Below, piece by piece: positions 498-30,880 of a DNA stretch of 32,000 nucleotides. Both the position numbers and the translations under genes were made by a program. Origin of the DNA: Zygophlyctis sp. KS116 (lineage: Eukaryota > Fungi > Chytridiomycota); NCBI GenBank assembly GCA_054661495.1, contig BAAFSQ010000092.1, forward strand, positions 1 to 32,000. The letters are read 5' to 3'. Each line of letters opens with the position of its first letter. Within the stretch, counting starts at the first letter, position 1. The notes beneath the pieces were generated by a model. It had not been told where the DNA came from. It saw nothing but the letters and a program-made list of their open reading frames with translations, and did not search any database.

Positions 498-2586
498 TTA
501 CTCGCAAAAAGAATCCTTCAAGAATGATTCAAAATCATAACCATCTTCCTTTTGAGACATTTTAGCAGCCAAAAATTCAACCGTCGCAGGTGCAATCCCG
601 ACAGTTAATAAATCATGCTTGGTAATAAACTTCTTTTCGATTGCTAAAGTGCTAAATGCAGATTGCAACTGATCAACTGTAACGCGATCTTCCTGCTCAG
701 ACTTCATATAACCAATGTACTAATAATAAGAGATGTAATAAAAACCTTTTCAAAGGAAATGCCTTCTCTTCCGTCTGAAAGAGACAAGAACAGTTTTTCA
801 AATTCGTCATCCTAATTTATCAATTGATTAAAATATTACAGCAAATTCTTCACCTTCAGCCTTTAGAGCCAATTTGAATCCATCACGGTCCAACAAATTA
901 GTATTAGCCTTATCACAAGATTTAAAGGTTTCAGAGTATTCTTCGAGCTGTTCCGCAGTAACATTTGTCATACTTCTGGCGACAATTTGATTTTCTATAA
1001 ATACCAATTTCTTTTTCAAAGACTGACCAAGAAGATTAGTATCGAAATCAAGATCCTCGACAGAATAAATGGTATATCTAGCAATTTAGAAACCAAATTA
1101 AATTACTCATTGTCTTCAATATTTGCAATTTCACACTGTGAATTTAGTTCAACAATCAATGGTAATTGTTTCTTTAAATTTTCTAGCTGGGCTGCAAAAC
1201 CATGAAATGTCGTTAGTTGAGTTTCCAGCGTGCCTTCAACAACTGTGACATCATTTGCAATATTTGCTAAATCTTGAGCATACTTATTAGCAGCATCTGC
1301 ATAACTCTTGCGAAGAGAATCTTTAATACCTCGAATAGAGGCAGTAATAGCACGTTTTCTATTTGCCTCTGTAGCTAAAAGATTATTCCAGGTATTAGAA
1401 AGGTCCTCAAGTGTAAGTCCTGCAGGAGGAGTATAATGATTCAGCTTGTAAGTTTGTAACTTTGTTTGAATATTACCCAAAAGCTAAAATATTTAAAAAT
1501 TAAAAATTACAGTATCTAGTTCACGTCTTTCAGAAATCCAATTTCTTTTTGTTGTCCCTTTATAATTTTCAAACTCTTTTAATTGTCTAATTGTATCAGA
1601 ATAACCATTAAAAGTAGACTTTTTCCAAACTTGTGCCATATTTTCAACTTGATTCTTCAAATTTGTAACTCTCAACTCATAGTCATGTTCCATTTCCCAA
1701 GCTTGTTGCATTACTTGAGCAAATCCATCAACACGACGTGCAGCAGTTCCAAACTTATCTTGTACTGAAAAAGCATGAAAGTATTGAGCTACATAAGTCA
1801 TTACTGAACGTTCATCAGGCTAAATTTAGCTTTTAAATTTTAAAAAAATACCTTTACAACATCCACAATATCCTCAACTCCAAACAATTTAGGAATTCCT
1901 AAATGTTTTTCCGCAATATCAAAGGCTAATTGAGTATTTTCATTCCTTTTAGACTTATCCAAGGCCCAATAATCTAATAAATCTGGTCTATGCCTATGAA
2001 TCAATCCACAAAGAGCTAATCCTGATTGCCAAGAAAATGTAAATTCCCTTATAGTAAAATCAGAAGCATAAGGAGTCGTTCTCTTTTGACACCAAAGTAA
2101 TAAACCTTCTTTAGCACTTAGACCTTCTTCAGAAATTTCTGAAATAGAAAAACGAAGAATTATTGTCCAAATCAATCCCAAAATTAACTTTAAATTTGAG
2201 TCTACTATATCTTCTGCCCCAATATTAGTCAGCTGAACCTTCTTCTTCCTAATAAAATCCAATGCCAGAGTCAAGTTTTCCATTTGTTGAATTCTTAATT
2301 TTGGATTTTTATTGTATTTCCCCAAACTTTCATCTGAAATTACTTCTAGTAACTGAATAAGCGACACTCCTGAAGAGACATCAGTTTCCAAATTACCGAT
2401 AGTTGGAAGAGATTTCTTACTCAATTGATTATTGATCCAATTCAAAAAAGTCTTTTTCTGGATATTTTCCCAAGATTTATCCATGACAACTGCAGTGTCG
2501 AGTACTTGTTCTACTGACGCTTTTGAGGCGATAAAAGAGCTACGTTGTTCAGACATAAATTTACCAGCATCCATCGATTCTCTCAT
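498..2586 (-). CDS. ACTN: Alpha-actinin (2 CH domains, short spectrin-repeat rod, C-terminal EF-hands), 5 introns
   Basis: CH motifs WENIQKKTFLNWIN, IGAEDIVDSNLKLILGLIWTIILRF, SAKEGLLLWCQ and KPDERSVMTYV. GT-AG introns at 1820-1851, 1484-1510, 1078-1106, 812-839 and 720-745 join the ORFs in frame. Start ATG inferred. Confidence 0.95.
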
Positions 2587-2768
2587 CAACTTTTTTGACC
2601 GTGCAACGGCCCGACTCAACTATTTTGACTGGCCGCTAATGCATTAAATGATTTAGAATATTGAAACTTACGGCGCTCAAAGAGTCTTGGGCTTTCTAAT
2701 GATCTGATCCTATTTGGTTAATCCTCCAATGCTCCAAATTATTGCAATTTACAAATCTTAAATTCCCG

Positions 2769-4300
2769 ATGTCATATTCTTCTGATCTAAAGACTGATGT
2801 TTGTTTACAGAGATTGTCAAGGATAAAATCAGGATTCTCTAAATCAAATTATAATAGGCTGTTGGATTTTAAGCAAGGGAATATAAGACTAGAACAAAGA
2901 ATTAAAAAATTAGAAAATAAGGATTTCAAGATTTGTAGTCATAAAGTGATTTGGATAGATGAATATCATAGACTGTTGGAGTTGGAATCACAATTGGAGT
3001 CGGAAAATGGTTTTTTAGAAGATACAAAAGATTCTTCTTCTTCTTTTAAAGAATTATTAGAAAAGGAAGAGGAATTAAGTGCTGAAATACTCAAATTACA
3101 AGGGAAAAATAGTATTCTTTCAATGGATCATTGGAATCCATGGATTGAATATAATGGTGAAAAACTAAAATTCTTGGATTTAACATGTTCTGATAAGGAT
3201 CTTACTATTTCAAGACAATTAGATTATCAGGAAATGTATGATAGGTGTCAGACTCAGGTTTATGAATTGAATTTAAATTATTCAGAGGTTTTAAAAAAGG
3301 AAAATGGGGGTTTCCAAGTAGAAGAACTTTTTAAATTTAGAAAATTAAGGCAAGAGTATTCAAAAGTTTCTAAAAAGGAATTTTATGAACGGGCAATATT
3401 GGAAATTAAAGGGAAATCTAAAAAGGAACTTTTAGAATTGGAATTTTGGATTCAGAAATTAGACTGTTATAAGTCTAAAGTTTCTAGTCTATTTTGGAAA
3501 TATAAGGGACTGATAAATGGGTTTATTCAAAGGACTAGAGAGATTTATCGTGAAAATCAAGACTTTTTTCTACTAGACTCTTTAAAAGAAGAAGAGGAAT
3601 GTATTAGAAAAGAGAAATCAAGACTTTTACATGAAAGAATTGAACTTTGGAAAAGAGAAAAACTTTATGAAATTAGGAAGATAGAAAATAATCTTTCAAA
3701 AGAATTACAAGAAAAACTAGAAAAAGAACAGCAAGACTTTACAAAAAAGCTCAAATTAAGAGAAAAAGTACAGAATGATTTAGAAAAATATCATGAAAAA
3801 TTGCTTTTGGATGTCTTCAAACAAGAAAGTATCATTAAAAATAGAGAAAATCAACGTTTACTAGAAAAGGAACTTGAAAATCAACACAATAAATCAAGAA
3901 TAGAATATCGCCATAGTCTATTAAAGGATCGAGAACGTGAAAAATCCGCCAGAAATGCATTGGAGCAGGATAAGAAAAGATGGAGAGATAAACAGCTGGA
4001 ATTATCAAAATACAAAGTGGAAGTAGAAGAGTATATTTTTGAATAATAATCAGTAGAGATCCAAGTAGAATTTACAGGGATACGATTGCATTTTCTTGTA
4101 GCAAAAACTCTGTATCTGTAGAAAAACAATTGTTTCCAGTTAATGGATTCACATTAGAAAAATTAATGCGAGATAAAAGAGTTGTATTATCAATGGCATT
4201 ACATGCACAGGGACTTGATCACTCTAGCTATGGCAGGGAGATTTTAGCATCACTCTGCGAAGGACACAGTAGAGATTTCAAGTCAAACATTGTTTTTTAA
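2769..4300 (+). CDS. CCDC148: CCDC148-like coiled-coil protein, 1 intron
   Basis: Long E/K/L coiled coil. Intron 4031-4053 (or 4056) leads into the exon DPSRIYRDT...LFPVNGFTLEKLMRDKRV...ALHAQGL...YGREIL, which resembles the conserved CCDC148 C-terminus. Confidence 0.75.
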
Positions 4301-5160: not shown

Positions 5161-6492
5161 ATGGATTTTGATGTTTTGGTTCTTGGTACCGGCCTTTTAG
5201 AATCAATACTGTCGGCCGAAATCTCTAAAAAAGGTTTAACAGTTGGACATTTAGATAACTTGCCATTCTATGGACGATCGCACTCGCTGTTGGATGATCG
5301 GCTAGTAACCAATCTCAAACAAGATGGGAAAAAACCAGCCAAGTGTAATTTAGAGACTGCTCCAAAGCTAGTATATGCAAATGGATCTTTAGTGAACCTT
5401 TTGATTGATTCCAAAGTTGGATCTTATCTAGAATTTAAAGAATGCAATGGAATATATGTTTTTCTAAATAACAGCTGGAAGACTCTTCCTGAAAGCAAGG
5501 AAGATGTTTTTGCGAATCAAACTCTAACTCTGATTGAAAAACGGAAATTGATGAAATTTATAACAACCACTAAAGACTTTACAGGAGAAAATGAGAATAA
5601 TTTCAATACTTTTGCAGAATATTTAGAGTCTTTTGATTTAGGAGATAATCTTGTTCAAATGATTTTATATGGCATTTTTTTATTTTCAGGCACAAGAGAT
5701 GATTTTTACTGTAATTTCCTTTAAATTAAAATAATTAGCACAAGAATATCAGTCTGGTATTAATAAAGCCAAACTTTACTTGAACTCTATTGGTAGATTT
5801 TGTAAAAGTGGATTTTTGGTAGGAATGCATGGAGTTGGTAGTGAATTATGTCAAGGTTTTTGTAGATCATCTGCAGTTCATGGTGGTACTTTTATTTTAG
5901 ACTTGAAAATCAACAAAATTCTGAAAGACAAGTCTACAAATCAATTTCAAGTTCAAACTGCAGATAATCAAGTATTTACTTGTAAGAATTTGATCGCATC
6001 ATCTGATTTTTCCTGTTATTATGAAAACTGTAGCTCTACTTTTTCAAGGTATTAATCTTAAATTTCTTAAATTAGAACTTCAATTTGCAGATCTATTCAT
6101 ATTTTTTCATATCCTTTATTTCCCAACTCTAAAACTTCTCTCTTCATTCTACCTCCAAACACCACAAGTTCTAAATCTATTATTGGAATCCAAATGAGTT
6201 CAGAGACAGCATCTGTTCCAGAAGATAATTGTAATTTTTCTTTAATTTATTAGTAGGGGTAATTTATCTTTTTGGAGAAATCACGTCTCAAGAAATGGAA
6301 AAAACTATAGATTTCCTGTTTCCACTTAAAAATCATTTATATTCTTCAATTTACAATCAAATAGTATCAAAGGTTGAAAAATCAAATGATCCCAACATTG
6401 AATGGTGTCAATCTTGCGATGAAAAAATTGATGATGAAGTAATTATATCTATTGCGAATGCATACTTGTCAAAATTCAATAATAAAGAGTAA
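5161..6492 (+). CDS. MRS6: Rab escort protein (Rab GGTase component A; GDI/CHM family), 3 introns
   Basis: FDVLVLGTGLLESILSA..HLD..FYG, PESKEDVF..LTLIEKRKLMKF and SELCQGFCRSSAVHGGTFIL. Introns at 5711-5738, 6049-6075 and 6231-6256. Confidence 0.85.
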
Positions 6493-27103: not shown

Positions 27104-30001
27104 ATGAACAAATTCATTCAACAAAATCCAAATTTCTCATTGATTGGGTTACTAATTGGTAAAATATATCAAAGCTCGCTAGGAATATTTAGTCAAGATT
27201 TCAAGCCTGTGCTTCTATTTAAACAATTGAATAGAGAAACTAATAAAGATGCGCTAGAATCTACTCAAATAGATGAATGGATAGATTTCTTAAATGAAGG
27301 AATTTCTTTAAATTCTCTTGAAAAACATTTACAATTAAGATCTTTTTTAGTGGGTTATAAACTATCATTGGCTGATGTTTTGATTTGGGGATTTTTGGCT
27401 CAGGATTATAAAAAAAAGAATTTTGTGAATCTAAATAGATGGTTTGATTCCATAAATTCAATTCCGGTTTTCAAGGAATCTTTACAGGAATTTAAAAAAA
27501 TTGGAAATAAGGATCAACAAGGGAATTTTGATATTCAGTTGAAAAATGCTGAAATGGGAAAAGTGGTGACTAGATTTCCTCCTGAACCTTCAGGTTATTT
27601 ACATATTGGTCATGCAAAGGCTGCATTATTAAATGATTATTTTGCGAAATTATACAAGGGGAAATTACTTCTTAGATTTGATGATACTAATCCTTCAAAA
27701 GAGAAAATGGAGTATGAGAATTCTATAAAGGAAGATTTGGAATTATTAGGAATTAAAGCAGACTCGGTGTCTCATACTTCTGATCATTTCTCAAAGATTT
27801 ATGATTATGCAATTACCATGATAAAATCTGGGCTTGCATATGTTGATGATACTGATCAGGAAACAATGAGAGCTCAAAGATTTGATGGAATAGAGTCAAA
27901 ATGTAGAAACAAGTCTGTCGAGGAGAATTTAAGAGATTTTGAAGAAATGAAAAATGGGACTGCATTTGGTTTAAAATCATGTCTAAGGGCGAAAATTGAT
28001 ATGACAGATAAGAATAAGGCGATGAGAGATCCAGTGATTTATAGATGTAATCTTATTCCTCATCCTCATACAGGAACTACTTATAAAATGTATCCTACTT
28101 ATGATTTTGTATGCCCAATTGTGGATTCTATTGAAGGCGTGACTCATGCTTTACGTACAAATGAATATAGAGATCGTAATCCACAATACGAATGGTTCTT
28201 AAAGGCTTTGAATCTTCGTTGGGTTCATATTTGGGATTATTCAAGACTTAATTTTGTTTACACCTTATTATCCAAGCGTAAATTGACATGGTTTGTTGAA
28301 CAGGGTCTTGTATCTGGCTGGGATGATCCTCGATTTGCCACTGTTAGGGGTATTAGAAGACGTGGAATGACTATTGAAGCTTTAAGGTCTTATATTTTGA
28401 GTCAAGGGGCATCTCAAAGAGAATTATCCTTGGAATGGGATAAGCTGTGGAATACAAACAAGAAAGTTATTGATCCAGTTGCATCTAGATATACTGCTCT
28501 AATCAAGGATAAACTGTATATTTTAAATATTTTTAAAAATTAGTGTGAAAGTAAACGTATTAGATTCTGTTAAACCTCATGAAAAAACACTTCCAAAGCA
28601 TAAGAAAAATCCTGAAGTAGGAACTAAAATTACTTCTTACTCCTCTAAATTATATTTAGAGTTTGAGGATGCCAAAGATCTTGTTGAAGAAGAAGAGGTC
28701 ACATTTATGGATTGGGGTAATGTGATTGTCAAAAAAGTTAATTGGAATGCAGAAAAATCGTCTTTAGAATCAATCGACATTTCATTACACTTGGAGGGCG
28801 ATTTTAAGAAAACAAAGAAGAAACTAACGTGGTTATCGGACGGGGAAGGATTATCTGCAGATCGTGGCCTAGTCAACGTTCTACTTTTAGATTATGATTA
28901 CCTTATTACGAAAAAGAAATTAGAAGAAGATGATGAATTAGAAAAGTTTATCACTCCTGTGACAGAATTCAAGTCATTTGCCGTTGGAGATGGAAATCTT
29001 CGGCTTTTGAAAAAAGGTAAGGCGTAAATAAACTCATTCTATAGGTGATGTAATACAATTCGAGCGAAAAGGATATTATATCTGTGATAAGCCTTTCGAC
29101 GCTTCTAATCCAAATTCTGACATCCACTTTATTCTTATTCCAGATGGTAAAGTAGCGAATATGACTTCAAAAGCAACAGAGGCTGTTACTAAGGATTCGG
29201 GAAAGGCTAAGCAGAGCAAGAAAGCAGAAAAGATGCCAAAAGCTCCACTGAACTCAAAAAATAAGATGTATGCCATGGATAGCATATATGATGAAAGTGT
29301 TCGAATAGATCAATCCAAGGTTTCCAAAATGTACCCGATGGATAGTGTGTGCGTTGATCAAACAGAAATCGAGACGGCTAGCATAGCAGTCAAAACGCAA
29401 AATGCCGTCCCAAATTCAAAAACAGACTCGCCTAAAAAATCAAAACCTGCCAAGCAACAAACTCCAGCTCAAGAAGGTAAGTTTTTCAATTTTTGATATC
29501 TTAGCGTCAATTATCTCCAAACTAGATATTGTAGTTGGGAAAATTCTGTCCGTATCCAAACATCCTGATGCTGATACTCTCTATGTTGAAGAAATAGATG
29601 TTGGAGAAGAAGCACCCAGGACAGTCGTATCAGGCCTAGTTAAATTTATGAAACCAGAGGACATGAAGGATAAGACAATTCTAGTTTTAAAGAATCTCAA
29701 GCCTGTATCGATGAGAGGAGTCAAATCTCATGCAATGGTCCTTTGCGCTTCTGATTCTACTCATGAAAAAGTTGAATTTCTGATCCCTCCCGCCGGATCA
29801 CTTCCTGGAGAGTCTGTGTACTTTGAAGGCCATGAAGGGACTCCTGAACTTCAACTAAACCCCAAGAAGAAGGTCTGGGAAAGTATCCAACCTGATTTCT
29901 CCACTCGCGATGACTTGGTAGCTACATGGAAAGGAGTTGAATGGCGTACAAAACGAGGACTAGTTAAAACACCATCCATTCCAAAGGCCACAATCAAATA
30001 A
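27104..30001 (+). CDS. GUS1: Cytosolic glutamyl-tRNA synthetase with N-terminal GST-like domain, fused to a C-terminal Arc1p/EMAP II-like tRNA-binding domain (about 937 aa), 3 introns
   Basis: GST-like ([17 protein letters not shown]), [19 protein letters not shown] and IQFERKGYY, then [47 protein letters not shown]. Three 28-nt introns (28516-28543, 29017-29044, 29477-29504) give one 2814-nt frame. Confidence 0.92.
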
Positions 30002-30037: not shown

Positions 30038-30880
30038 TTAATCTTCATCCATTTCAGTTTGCAGTGAAGCCTTTGCCAATCTTTCAGCTTCTCCCAATAC
30101 TTGTTTAGGAACAAATTGATGAAGTCCGTTTGACTCTTGACACGCCCAACTCATCTCCAATTCAAATTCTTTATCCTTTACATCATCATGAACCATGTAA
30201 ATACTAAAATATTAAATTTCCAATAAATTTACATTCTAGCAGCTTCTTTTACAGCTTGCTGAACAGTTAATTCTTGAAAATTAAGTTTTTCCAACTCTGT
30301 CTTTGCCAACTGCTTTCCTTTCCCACAAGCTACAGCAAAATATCCCTAAATCTTTTAAAAGAAAAAAAAGATTACATGATACATACCACTTGGCTCAATC
30401 ATCATTAGCCTTGGACTTCCATCTTCATCCAAACACCCCAAGATTGCTGAAACACCAAAAGGTCTAACGGAACCGTACAAAGTGTAAGCCTGTACATACT
30501 GAGAGGTTCTCTCTGAAAGCATTCTAGCAGATATTGGTTTTTTATAAGTATCTCTATACTGTTTTGCTTCTTGTCTCGCTCGATTGACTAAATGTCTCGC
30601 ATCCGCAACCAAACCAGCCGATGTCATTCCTACATGCGAATCTACAGTCTGAATCCGAACGTTTGAGCCTTGAACCAACAGTTTTGAAGGAACGAGTTTT
30701 TCCACCGCCAAAACAATTCCATCCTTTGCTCTTATACCAATCGCAGTCCCTGAATTCTCAACAGCCTTGTTGGCGTATTCCACTTGAAATATTCTACCGT
30801 CTGGTGAGTACGTCGAAGAAGATAAATCATACTGTTGTTAAAAATAGTCAAAAACTCACTCCAGTTCCAATTGAAGTCAT
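30038..30880 (-). CDS. PRE10: 20S proteasome subunit alpha-7 (PSMA3), 3 introns
   Basis: [39 protein letters not shown] and HDDVKDKEFELEMSW. Introns 30832-30859, 30346-30375 and 30204-30232. Confidence 0.97.

Follow-up and report, generated by a model that had tools for sequence, protein, structure and literature searches.

The locus at positions 27104–30001 of the DNA considered here encodes a glutamyl-tRNA synthetase (GluRS) that forms a single polypeptide with a lysine-rich tail and a C-terminal tRNA-binding module. The window, by which we mean the whole stretch of 32,000 nucleotides that was analysed, is taken from the chytrid fungus Zygophlyctis sp. KS116 (contig BAAFSQ010000092.1, positions 1 to 32,000). 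It contains a four-exon gene on the plus strand with a spliced length of 2811 nt, corresponding to 937 codons, and a TAA stop codon at 29999–30001. The fusion of GluRS to a module of the EMAPII/Arc1p-C type proves to be ordinary for chytrids; the new point is a putative docking peptide in the synthetase tail, similar to that of the animal scaffold protein AIMP2, which is widespread in fungi and undescribed in the literature searched. The parts of the gene, with the evidence for each, are as follows.

27104–28515, plus strand: exon 1, with the start codon, a shortened GST_C-like N-terminal domain (about 27308–27478) and the GluRS catalytic domain (about 27560–28474); Pfam, NCBIfam and orthologue alignment.
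28516–28543, plus strand: intron 1, 28 nt, GTAT..TTAG, phase 2; sequence, frame change and the ends of tblastn high-scoring segment pairs (HSPs).
28544–29016, plus strand: exon 2, the GluRS anticodon-binding domain; tRNA-synt_1c_C (2e-15), gltX_arch positions 412–538 and tblastn.
29017–29044, plus strand: intron 2, 28 nt, GTAAGG..ATAG, phase 1; sequence and tblastn.
29045–29151, plus strand: start of exon 3, the C-terminal end of the GluRS core (..IPDGK), its last 35 residues; end of tRNA-synt_1c_C2 and orthologue alignment.
29152–29262, plus strand: tail spacer 1, lysine-rich and of variable length among orthologues; orthologue alignment.
29263–29289, plus strand: motif 1, K-MYAMDSIY (MYAMDSIY at 29266–29289), AIMP2-like; alignment, profile and complex model.
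29326–29352, plus strand: motif 2, K-MYPMDSVC (MYPMDSVC at 29329–29352), AIMP2-like, 21 residues past motif 1; alignment, profile and complex model.
29353–29476, plus strand: tail spacer 2, rich in K, P, A and Q, to the end of exon 3; orthologue alignment.
29477–29504, plus strand: intron 3, 28 nt, GTAAGT..TTAG, phase 1; sequence and tblastn.
29505–30001, plus strand: exon 4, a complete EMAPII/Arc1p-C-like module (Pfam tRNA_bind at 29528–29812 plus the C-terminal subdomain), ending in the TAA stop codon.

The three introns are each exactly 28 nt long with GTA...TAG ends; when they are removed, the reading frame passes from 1 through 2 and 3 and returns to 1. In tblastn searches, four full-length GluRS-OB proteins of other chytrids matched the four exons one after another, and the HSPs ended where splicing is predicted; the orthologue P0173, for example, aligns with residues 680–811 ending at 29475 and residues 814–978 beginning at 29504. 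Between IPDGK, which ends at 29151, and intron 3, 108 codons remain open; in the protein, the tail that separates GluRS from the tRNA-binding module measures 109 residues. The N-terminus aligns with the orthologues from their first residues, and 27104 is therefore assigned as the start codon. Several internal deletions leave the GST-like N-terminal domain (27104–27560) about 25–70 residues short of its length in other chytrids, which fits a generally compacted genome. Introns are tiny throughout: 28, 28 and 28 nt in the GluRS gene, 26 nt in an Arc1p-like gene described below and, in Globomyces sp. JEL0801, about 29 nt at the corresponding junction (about 5289–5317).

Domain searches were run exon by exon, and questions concerning the whole protein were answered with natural orthologues, including the protein of Batrachochytrium dendrobatidis, which is encoded by a single open reading frame (ORF). 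Residues 1–152 match GST_C at 22.6 bits (cut-off 20.7). The core is recognised as tRNA-synt_1c in exon 1 (3e-110), tRNA-synt_1c_C in exon 2 (2e-15) and the end of tRNA-synt_1c_C2 in exon 3. On exon 1 alone, the NCBIfam model TIGR00463 gltX_arch scores 472.6 bits (cut-off 401.75) versus 327.1 for glnS, and exon 2 extends the match to model position 538 of 560; we conclude from the higher gltX_arch score that the enzyme is GluRS and not glutaminyl-tRNA synthetase. Both class I signatures, HIGH and an LSKRK loop equivalent to KMSKS, are present in the exon 1 translation. Profile score and signatures place the protein among the eukaryotic/archaeal-type GluRSs, with a GST_C-type domain ahead of the core. 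GST-type partners such as Arc1p usually attach to a GST-like domain of this kind.

Exon 4 matches tRNA_bind (PF01588) at 107.7 bits (3e-31; cut-off 27) and human EMAPII with an E value of 1e-51 over residues 6–159 of 166. The span of the latter alignment indicates a complete module and not the OB barrel alone; the barrel above the Pfam cut-off and the C-terminal subdomain together identify it as an EMAPII/Arc1p-C module. The protein as a whole is not a stand-alone Arc1p/AIMP1, because it has a full synthetase core. A preliminary description of this DNA had proposed the fusion, the 28-nt intron at 29477–29504, a frame open through the tail after IPDGK and a complete Arc1p-C/EMAP II OB-fold module. 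Sequence, Pfam and NCBIfam and collinear orthologue alignment bear out the fusion with its intron and the identities of the domains; the open frame is borne out by the 108 codons leading to the intron, and the completeness of the module by the EMAPII alignment, the C-terminal subdomain included. We regard the fusion and its orthology as a near certainty.

Alignment of the tails of 19 chytrid orthologues revealed two conserved motifs in otherwise variable lysine-rich sequence. The motifs take the form MYxΦxxΦY, with Lys ahead and often Gly behind. A simple pattern search found the pair in 50 GluRS tails, with invariant M-Y..M-Y and 19–22 residues between the two. The single motif is missing (0 matches) from 194 Arc1/AIMP1-, MetRS- and TyrRS-linked OB proteins (MetRS and TyrRS, methionyl- and tyrosyl-tRNA synthetase; 88,419 residues) and from the bodies of the GluRSs, and occurs 3 times in 68,039 residues of lysyl-tRNA synthetase (LysRS). 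When a profile of the motif pair was run on the genome (an assembly of 12.7 Mb in 1175 contigs, which was also used for the other genome searches below), the GluRS locus was the only match.

The pair also occurs at the very C-terminus of GluRSs that have no OB domain, in Dentipellis, Cerioporus, Tulasnella, Peniophora, a microbotryomycete, Coemansia, Neoconidiobolus, Ambispora, Zopfochytrium and Cladochytrium; by group, these OB-less carriers cover Agaricomycetes, Microbotryomycetes, Kickxellomycotina, Neoconidiobolus and Ambispora. In the tails of many non-chytrid fungal GluRSs (P0190, P0196, P0213, P0227, P0230, P0243, P0261, P0262, P0268 and others), a lysine-rich spacer is followed by the motif pair, and motif 2 often makes up the last residues of the protein. 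We conclude from its presence on OB-less enzymes that the pair is an independent feature of fungal GluRS tails, to which the chytrids append a second spacer and the OB module. Short, motif-free tails are found in Synchytrium, Basidiobolus, Dimargaris and a mucoralean. The GluRSs of Ascomycota and Cryptococcus are 712–728 residues long (PMC4301749); judged by length alone, yeast probably lacks the motif, which would explain why it was overlooked.

A profile (A1) built from the alignment of the 50 motif regions was run against 177,635 distinct PDB sequences. Its top four matches are all chains of the N-terminal peptide of AIMP2/p38 (9dpl_D, 4ycu_C, 6ild_C and 4dpg_I; E values of 0.08–0.27), and the next match follows at 2.7. 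Both motifs align with those of AIMP2, MYQVKPYH and MYRLPNVH, without gaps. The Pfam family PF16780, AIMP2_LysRS_bd, gives a weak match in 18 of the 50 peptides (best E value 4e-4), and any other family matches at most one of them. The profile of 50 sequences is what reached AIMP2: the single linker from the window, run by phmmer against the PDB sequences, returned nothing at E ≤ 10. PF16780 found no match over the whole genome, and it found none in control genomes either, so that this result says little. The motif region lies below the family threshold of 27 bits, and the tail has neither the leucine zipper nor the C-terminal GST domain of the AIMP2/p38 scaffold. For the sub-threshold motif region we accordingly propose that it may work like the AIMP2 peptide and not that it belongs to the family.

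AIMP2 binds underneath the LysRS dimer (PMC4394549). The LysRS gene of the genome lies on contig C121 and is split by introns. A complex was therefore modelled from two copies of residues 75–555 of the LysRS P0271 and a 36-residue peptide from the window (29254–29361), with unrelated peptides, or an unrelated protein in place of LysRS, as controls. The predicted complex scored 0.71, and the best of three controls 0.00. In a calibration that included no peptides, that mark was attained by 51 of 78 solved complexes and by 2 of 108 mismatched pairs. At least 81% of contacts are common to the runs, and the partner has a predicted local distance difference test (pLDDT) value of at least 68. In the model, motif 1 (peptide residues 2–13) contacts residues 84–91 in one LysRS copy's anticodon-binding domain (ABD) and residues 323–345 of the catalytic domain of the other, and motif 2 (peptide residues 22–35) contacts the mirror-image site. 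This modelled geometry is that described for AIMP2 (PMC11643047). In the same paper, the Km of LysRS for tRNA falls about two-fold with the AIMP2 peptide. At position 243 of P0271, in the predicted groove (alignment A2), Gly is replaced by Asp in Basidiobolus and Dimargaris and is Gly in Synchytrium endobioticum, cases too few to interpret.

We take the gene to encode the cytosolic GluRS of this chytrid. Its single polypeptide has five parts: a shortened GST-like domain, the GluRS core of class I, a spacer rich in lysine, the pair of AIMP2-like motifs, and a further spacer that leads into the EMAPII/Arc1p-C module. We propose that the OB module would act in cis as a general tRNA-binding cofactor, lowering the Michaelis constant (Km) for tRNA. 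The motif pair would tether a LysRS dimer to GluRS, as the AIMP2/p38 N-terminal peptide does in animals, and the GST-like domain would stay available for Arc1p-type contacts. GluRS might thus be both an enzyme and the scaffold of a GluRS–LysRS assembly that also includes Arc1p and MetRS. By analogy with what is established for plant MetRS, for Arc1p and for an engineered MetRS–Arc1pC fusion (PMC4394549; references 45–46 of PMC11286949), we judge the cis-cofactor role to be highly probable. Docking of LysRS by the motif pair, suggested by the profile, the Pfam matches and the complex model, is in our view the likelier account of the motifs, and the reading as a whole, with fused gene, cis cofactor and LysRS docking, commands a similar, measured degree of confidence.

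Several observations weigh against this proposal. The PDB and Pfam matches lie below conventional significance, and the four PDB matches represent one peptide. The 36-residue peptide of the window gives no match to PF16780 (E > 10), and its motif 2 ends in VC and not in VYG. The LysRS used in the model, P0271, is a metagenome protein 96% identical to the large LysRS exon of the genome and not the genome's own spliced product. Because LysRS–AIMP2 complexes have been solved, the high score may reflect recall, and it shows likeness and not binding by this copy; moreover, the calibration of the test did not cover peptides. The residues of the LysRS groove are about equally conserved in species with the GluRS motifs and in those without them (Synchytrium, Basidiobolus and Dimargaris), which gives no co-variation signal. 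Finally, the sole contig from an RNA library that spans intron 3 is unspliced (151 nt, 29356–29506, from a lake-water metatranscriptome, depth 3).

In an alternative reading, the tail is a cis tRNA-binding appendage and nothing else, the middle and C-terminal domains of Arc1p having moved onto GluRS. The MY motifs would then have some different role: they might touch tRNA, fold back onto GluRS or the OB module, or bind a partner other than LysRS, such as another class IIb synthetase or Arc1p. An OB module with lysine-rich spacers is indeed typical of the appendages of Arc1p, AIMP1 and plant MetRS (PMC4394549, PMC11286949), the likeness to AIMP2 is statistically marginal, with the window peptide failing PF16780, and the complex model may recall a solved structure. 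We nevertheless find this alternative doubtful. None of the 194 other OB-carrying proteins, the Arc1p/AIMP1 homologues among them, has the motifs, and GluRS tails devoid of an OB domain retain them, which places them outside the tRNA-binding module. In spacing and residues they match both AIMP2 motifs without gaps, and the controls with unrelated peptides or with an unrelated protein for LysRS scored 0.00.

The unspliced contig bears on a further alternative, in which intron 3 acts as a regulated switch or frequently stays in the transcript. Parts of the gene were found in five freshwater and lake metatranscriptome runs as nine short contigs. No splice joint was seen in these nine contigs, which may be DNA or pre-mRNA; for this reason the RNA is uninformative on splicing. 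The 151-nt contig matches the window without a difference and holds the whole of intron 3; it could be pre-mRNA or contaminating DNA. Were the intron retained, translation would end at a TGA at 29494–29496, past the motifs but short of the OB domain, and would leave GluRS with the motifs and no OB domain, which is the architecture of many non-chytrid fungi. An ATG at 29402 begins a 199-codon ORF (29402–30001) in the frame of exon 4 that is open through the unspliced intron, and a stand-alone OB protein is in principle translatable from it on an intron-retaining transcript. The intron lies exactly at the module boundary, a position shared with the annotated gene of Globomyces sp. JEL0801. Regulated or frequent retention is nonetheless improbable: the contig is a single read-length piece at depth 3 from a metatranscriptome, for which DNA or pre-mRNA would suffice; B. 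dendrobatidis has no intron at this junction, so that the fused protein is always made there; the fused state runs throughout the chytrid GluRS-OB orthologues; and a stand-alone OB protein is already provided by a free Arc1p. That the fusion is an artefact, with two neighbouring genes or a mis-assembly read as one, finds a foothold in the spliced reads that were not recovered but can be dismissed in view of the 108 codons open past the GluRS core in a genome of 33% GC, the 28-nt form that intron 3 shares with introns 1 and 2, and the collinearity with dozens of independent assemblies, a single-ORF orthologue included.

The distribution of the architecture was surveyed with the C-terminal half of the Chytridiales sp. 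JEL0842 protein as query. GluRS with tRNA_bind is annotated in 31 named chytrid species (NCBI), from Chytridiales, Rhizophydiales (with both Batrachochytrium species), Spizellomycetales, Rhizophlyctidales, Cladochytriales (Nowakowskiella), Polychytriales and Monoblepharidomycetes; Hyaloraphidium is among them. The OB domain is absent from the gene models of Synchytrium endobioticum, Zopfochytrium and Cladochytrium and from all non-chytrid fungi in the survey. GluRS-OB is the standard GluRS of Chytridiomycota. The closest relatives of every exon are chytrids; the OB domain of the window is nearest to that of Globomyces (Shimodaira–Hasegawa-like support 95), whose introns are similarly tiny, and in a FastTree tree, with weak support, the GluRS-borne OB domains form a separate chytrid group. 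These relationships point to a freshwater chytrid that is perhaps close to Rhizophydiales. In B. dendrobatidis a single unbroken ORF of 1018 codons encodes the orthologue; its translation is identical to the database protein, and a convergent proteasome-subunit gene lies downstream. Collinear alignment, intron position and this same neighbour place the window protein in the chytrid GluRS–EMAPII orthologue group.

30355–30783, minus strand: convergent proteasome-subunit gene, given as context; an ORF, with the same downstream neighbour in B. dendrobatidis.

Outside the fungi, GluRS–tRNA_bind proteins of about 790–815 residues were found in the diplonemids Flectonema, Diplonema japonicum and Rhynchopus (P0206, P0207, P0209; also P0203, one ENA contig). 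Their OB domains form a separate clade (support 100), remote from the chytrid one and suggestive of an independent fusion; to judge from these sequences, the fusion probably arose at least twice. The environmental proteins P0022 and P0200 may represent further origins.

Three tRNA_bind domains were found in the genome, in the GluRS of the window, in a free Arc1p-like protein and in TyrRS. The genes of the last two, and that of MetRS, are located as follows.

Contig C17 (55077–58355), local positions 860–1989, plus strand: free Arc1p/AIMP1-like gene (Arc1p_N_like 2e-12, tRNA_bind 4e-30).
Contig C282 (1–3264), local positions 1288–2804, minus strand: TyrRS with a C-terminal EMAPII-like domain.
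Contig C91 (20830–24888), local positions about 936–3367, plus strand: MetRS with an N-terminal extension of about 170 residues and a C-terminal WHEP-TRS domain (E value 3e-9), as in human MetRS.

The Arc1p-like gene encodes an Arc1p_N_like GST-type domain (860–1345), interrupted from what follows by a 26-nt intron (GTATG..ATAG, 1346–1371), then a short lysine-rich linker and an EMAPII-like domain; its protein has no MY motifs. A fused GluRS also coexists with a free Arc1p/AIMP1-like protein in Gorgonomyces and Polychytrium, and in Boothiomyces in different species. MetRS has no tRNA_bind domain. The preliminary description had suggested that MetRS may be recruited through the GST domain of GluRS; a search of the N-terminal extension of MetRS for a GST domain, in two N-terminal ORF pieces, gave no Pfam match even at E ≤ 10. 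The architecture of the TyrRS is known from animals. In the OB tree, the TyrRS OB domains of Chytridiales (Chytriomyces, Rhizoclosmatium, Physocladia, Entophlyctis and Siphonaria) nest within the chytrid GluRS-OB group (node support 95, FastTree only), and that of the present genome is placed elsewhere. One possibility suggested by the tree is that the TyrRS appendage of Chytridiales was replaced by a copy of the GluRS one.

A fusion that replaced Arc1p was considered and rejected on account of the free gene with Arc1p_N_like and tRNA_bind domains on C17: because the two genes coexist, the fusion did not replace Arc1p. The preliminary description had seen in the protein an Arc1p architecture with a synthetase inserted, and the search that it suggested for a free ARC1 gene found one. 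Its broader idea of an enzyme that is also a scaffold survives in another form: the Arc1p-replacement version fails, and the predicted AIMP2-like LysRS-docking motifs in the linker lend the idea support. It had also taken the appendage to be no standard feature of GluRS, which the 31 chytrid species contradict for this lineage, and had asked whether the architecture is already common and described in fungi. It is common; a published description of a fungal GluRS–EMAPII fusion was not found in the literature searched.

Docking of LysRS, if it takes place as predicted, would explain the conservation of what was supposed to be a spacer. Across chytrids, kickxellomycetes, glomeromycetes and many basidiomycetes, the motif pair predicts an unreported fungal GluRS–LysRS complex; a LysRS-binding motif on GluRS was likewise not described in the literature searched. 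According to a review, AIMP2/p38 is without a homologue in yeast, and the LysRS-containing complex originates near the origin of animals (PMC4394549). We hold it unlikely that the tandem MY motifs are homologous to the LysRS-binding N-terminus of AIMP2 and not merely convergent with it. If they were, LysRS docking on a GluRS-centred complex would be older than the divergence of fungi and animals. In the lineage where the C-terminus of GluRS became occupied by WHEP repeats and ProRS (prolyl-tRNA synthetase), the peptide would have been transferred to AIMP2, and an ancestral, compact form of the multisynthetase complex would survive in the chytrid protein, which would combine a GST handle, a LysRS-docking peptide and an EMAPII module on one synthetase. 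The motifs offer a testable handle on the assembly of such complexes, in which short docking peptides may move between carriers.

Comparison with known systems begins with the chytrid GluRS–tRNA_bind proteins (B. dendrobatidis, 1018 residues, P0176; JEL0842, KAJ3417380.1, P0001; Globomyces, P0180), which have the same domain order and two tail motifs and are 72–77% identical to the window protein in the OB module and about 61–66% in the catalytic exon. The window protein is shorter, at 937 residues, through deletions in the GST-like domain and the spacers, and its motif 2 ends in VC where the orthologues have VY(G). The diplonemid proteins share the order of GluRS followed by tRNA_bind but, unlike the chytrid ones, have no MY motifs. 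In plant and nematode MetRS, metazoan TyrRS and the engineered MetRS–Arc1pC fusion, a class I synthetase is followed, as here, by a basic linker and a C-terminal EMAPII module (match to PDB 1ntg, E value 5e-50), which in those proteins aids tRNA binding in cis (PMC4394549; references 45–46 of PMC11286949); the carrier in the present case is GluRS, and its linker contains the MY pair, which is absent from all 48 MetRS-OB and all 12 TyrRS-OB proteins examined. Yeast Arc1p and metazoan AIMP1 (p43) have a homologous OB domain and C-terminal subdomain (4r1j, 3e-40; EMAPII, 1e-51) with adjoining lysine-rich segments but, unlike the window GluRS, are non-enzymatic and use a GST-like or helical domain at the N-terminus to act in trans. 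Like the GluRS tails, the N-terminal peptide of AIMP2/p38 (4dpg, 4ycu, 6ild, 9dpl) contains two motifs of the form MYxΦxxΦ(Y/H)(G), spaced by about 21 residues. These are at the free N-terminus of a scaffold protein, whereas the chytrid motifs lie inside the C-terminal tail of a synthetase; the docking site predicted for the latter is the same as that of AIMP2, in the groove between the LysRS ABD of one subunit and the catalytic domain of the other (PMC11643047; PMC4394549).

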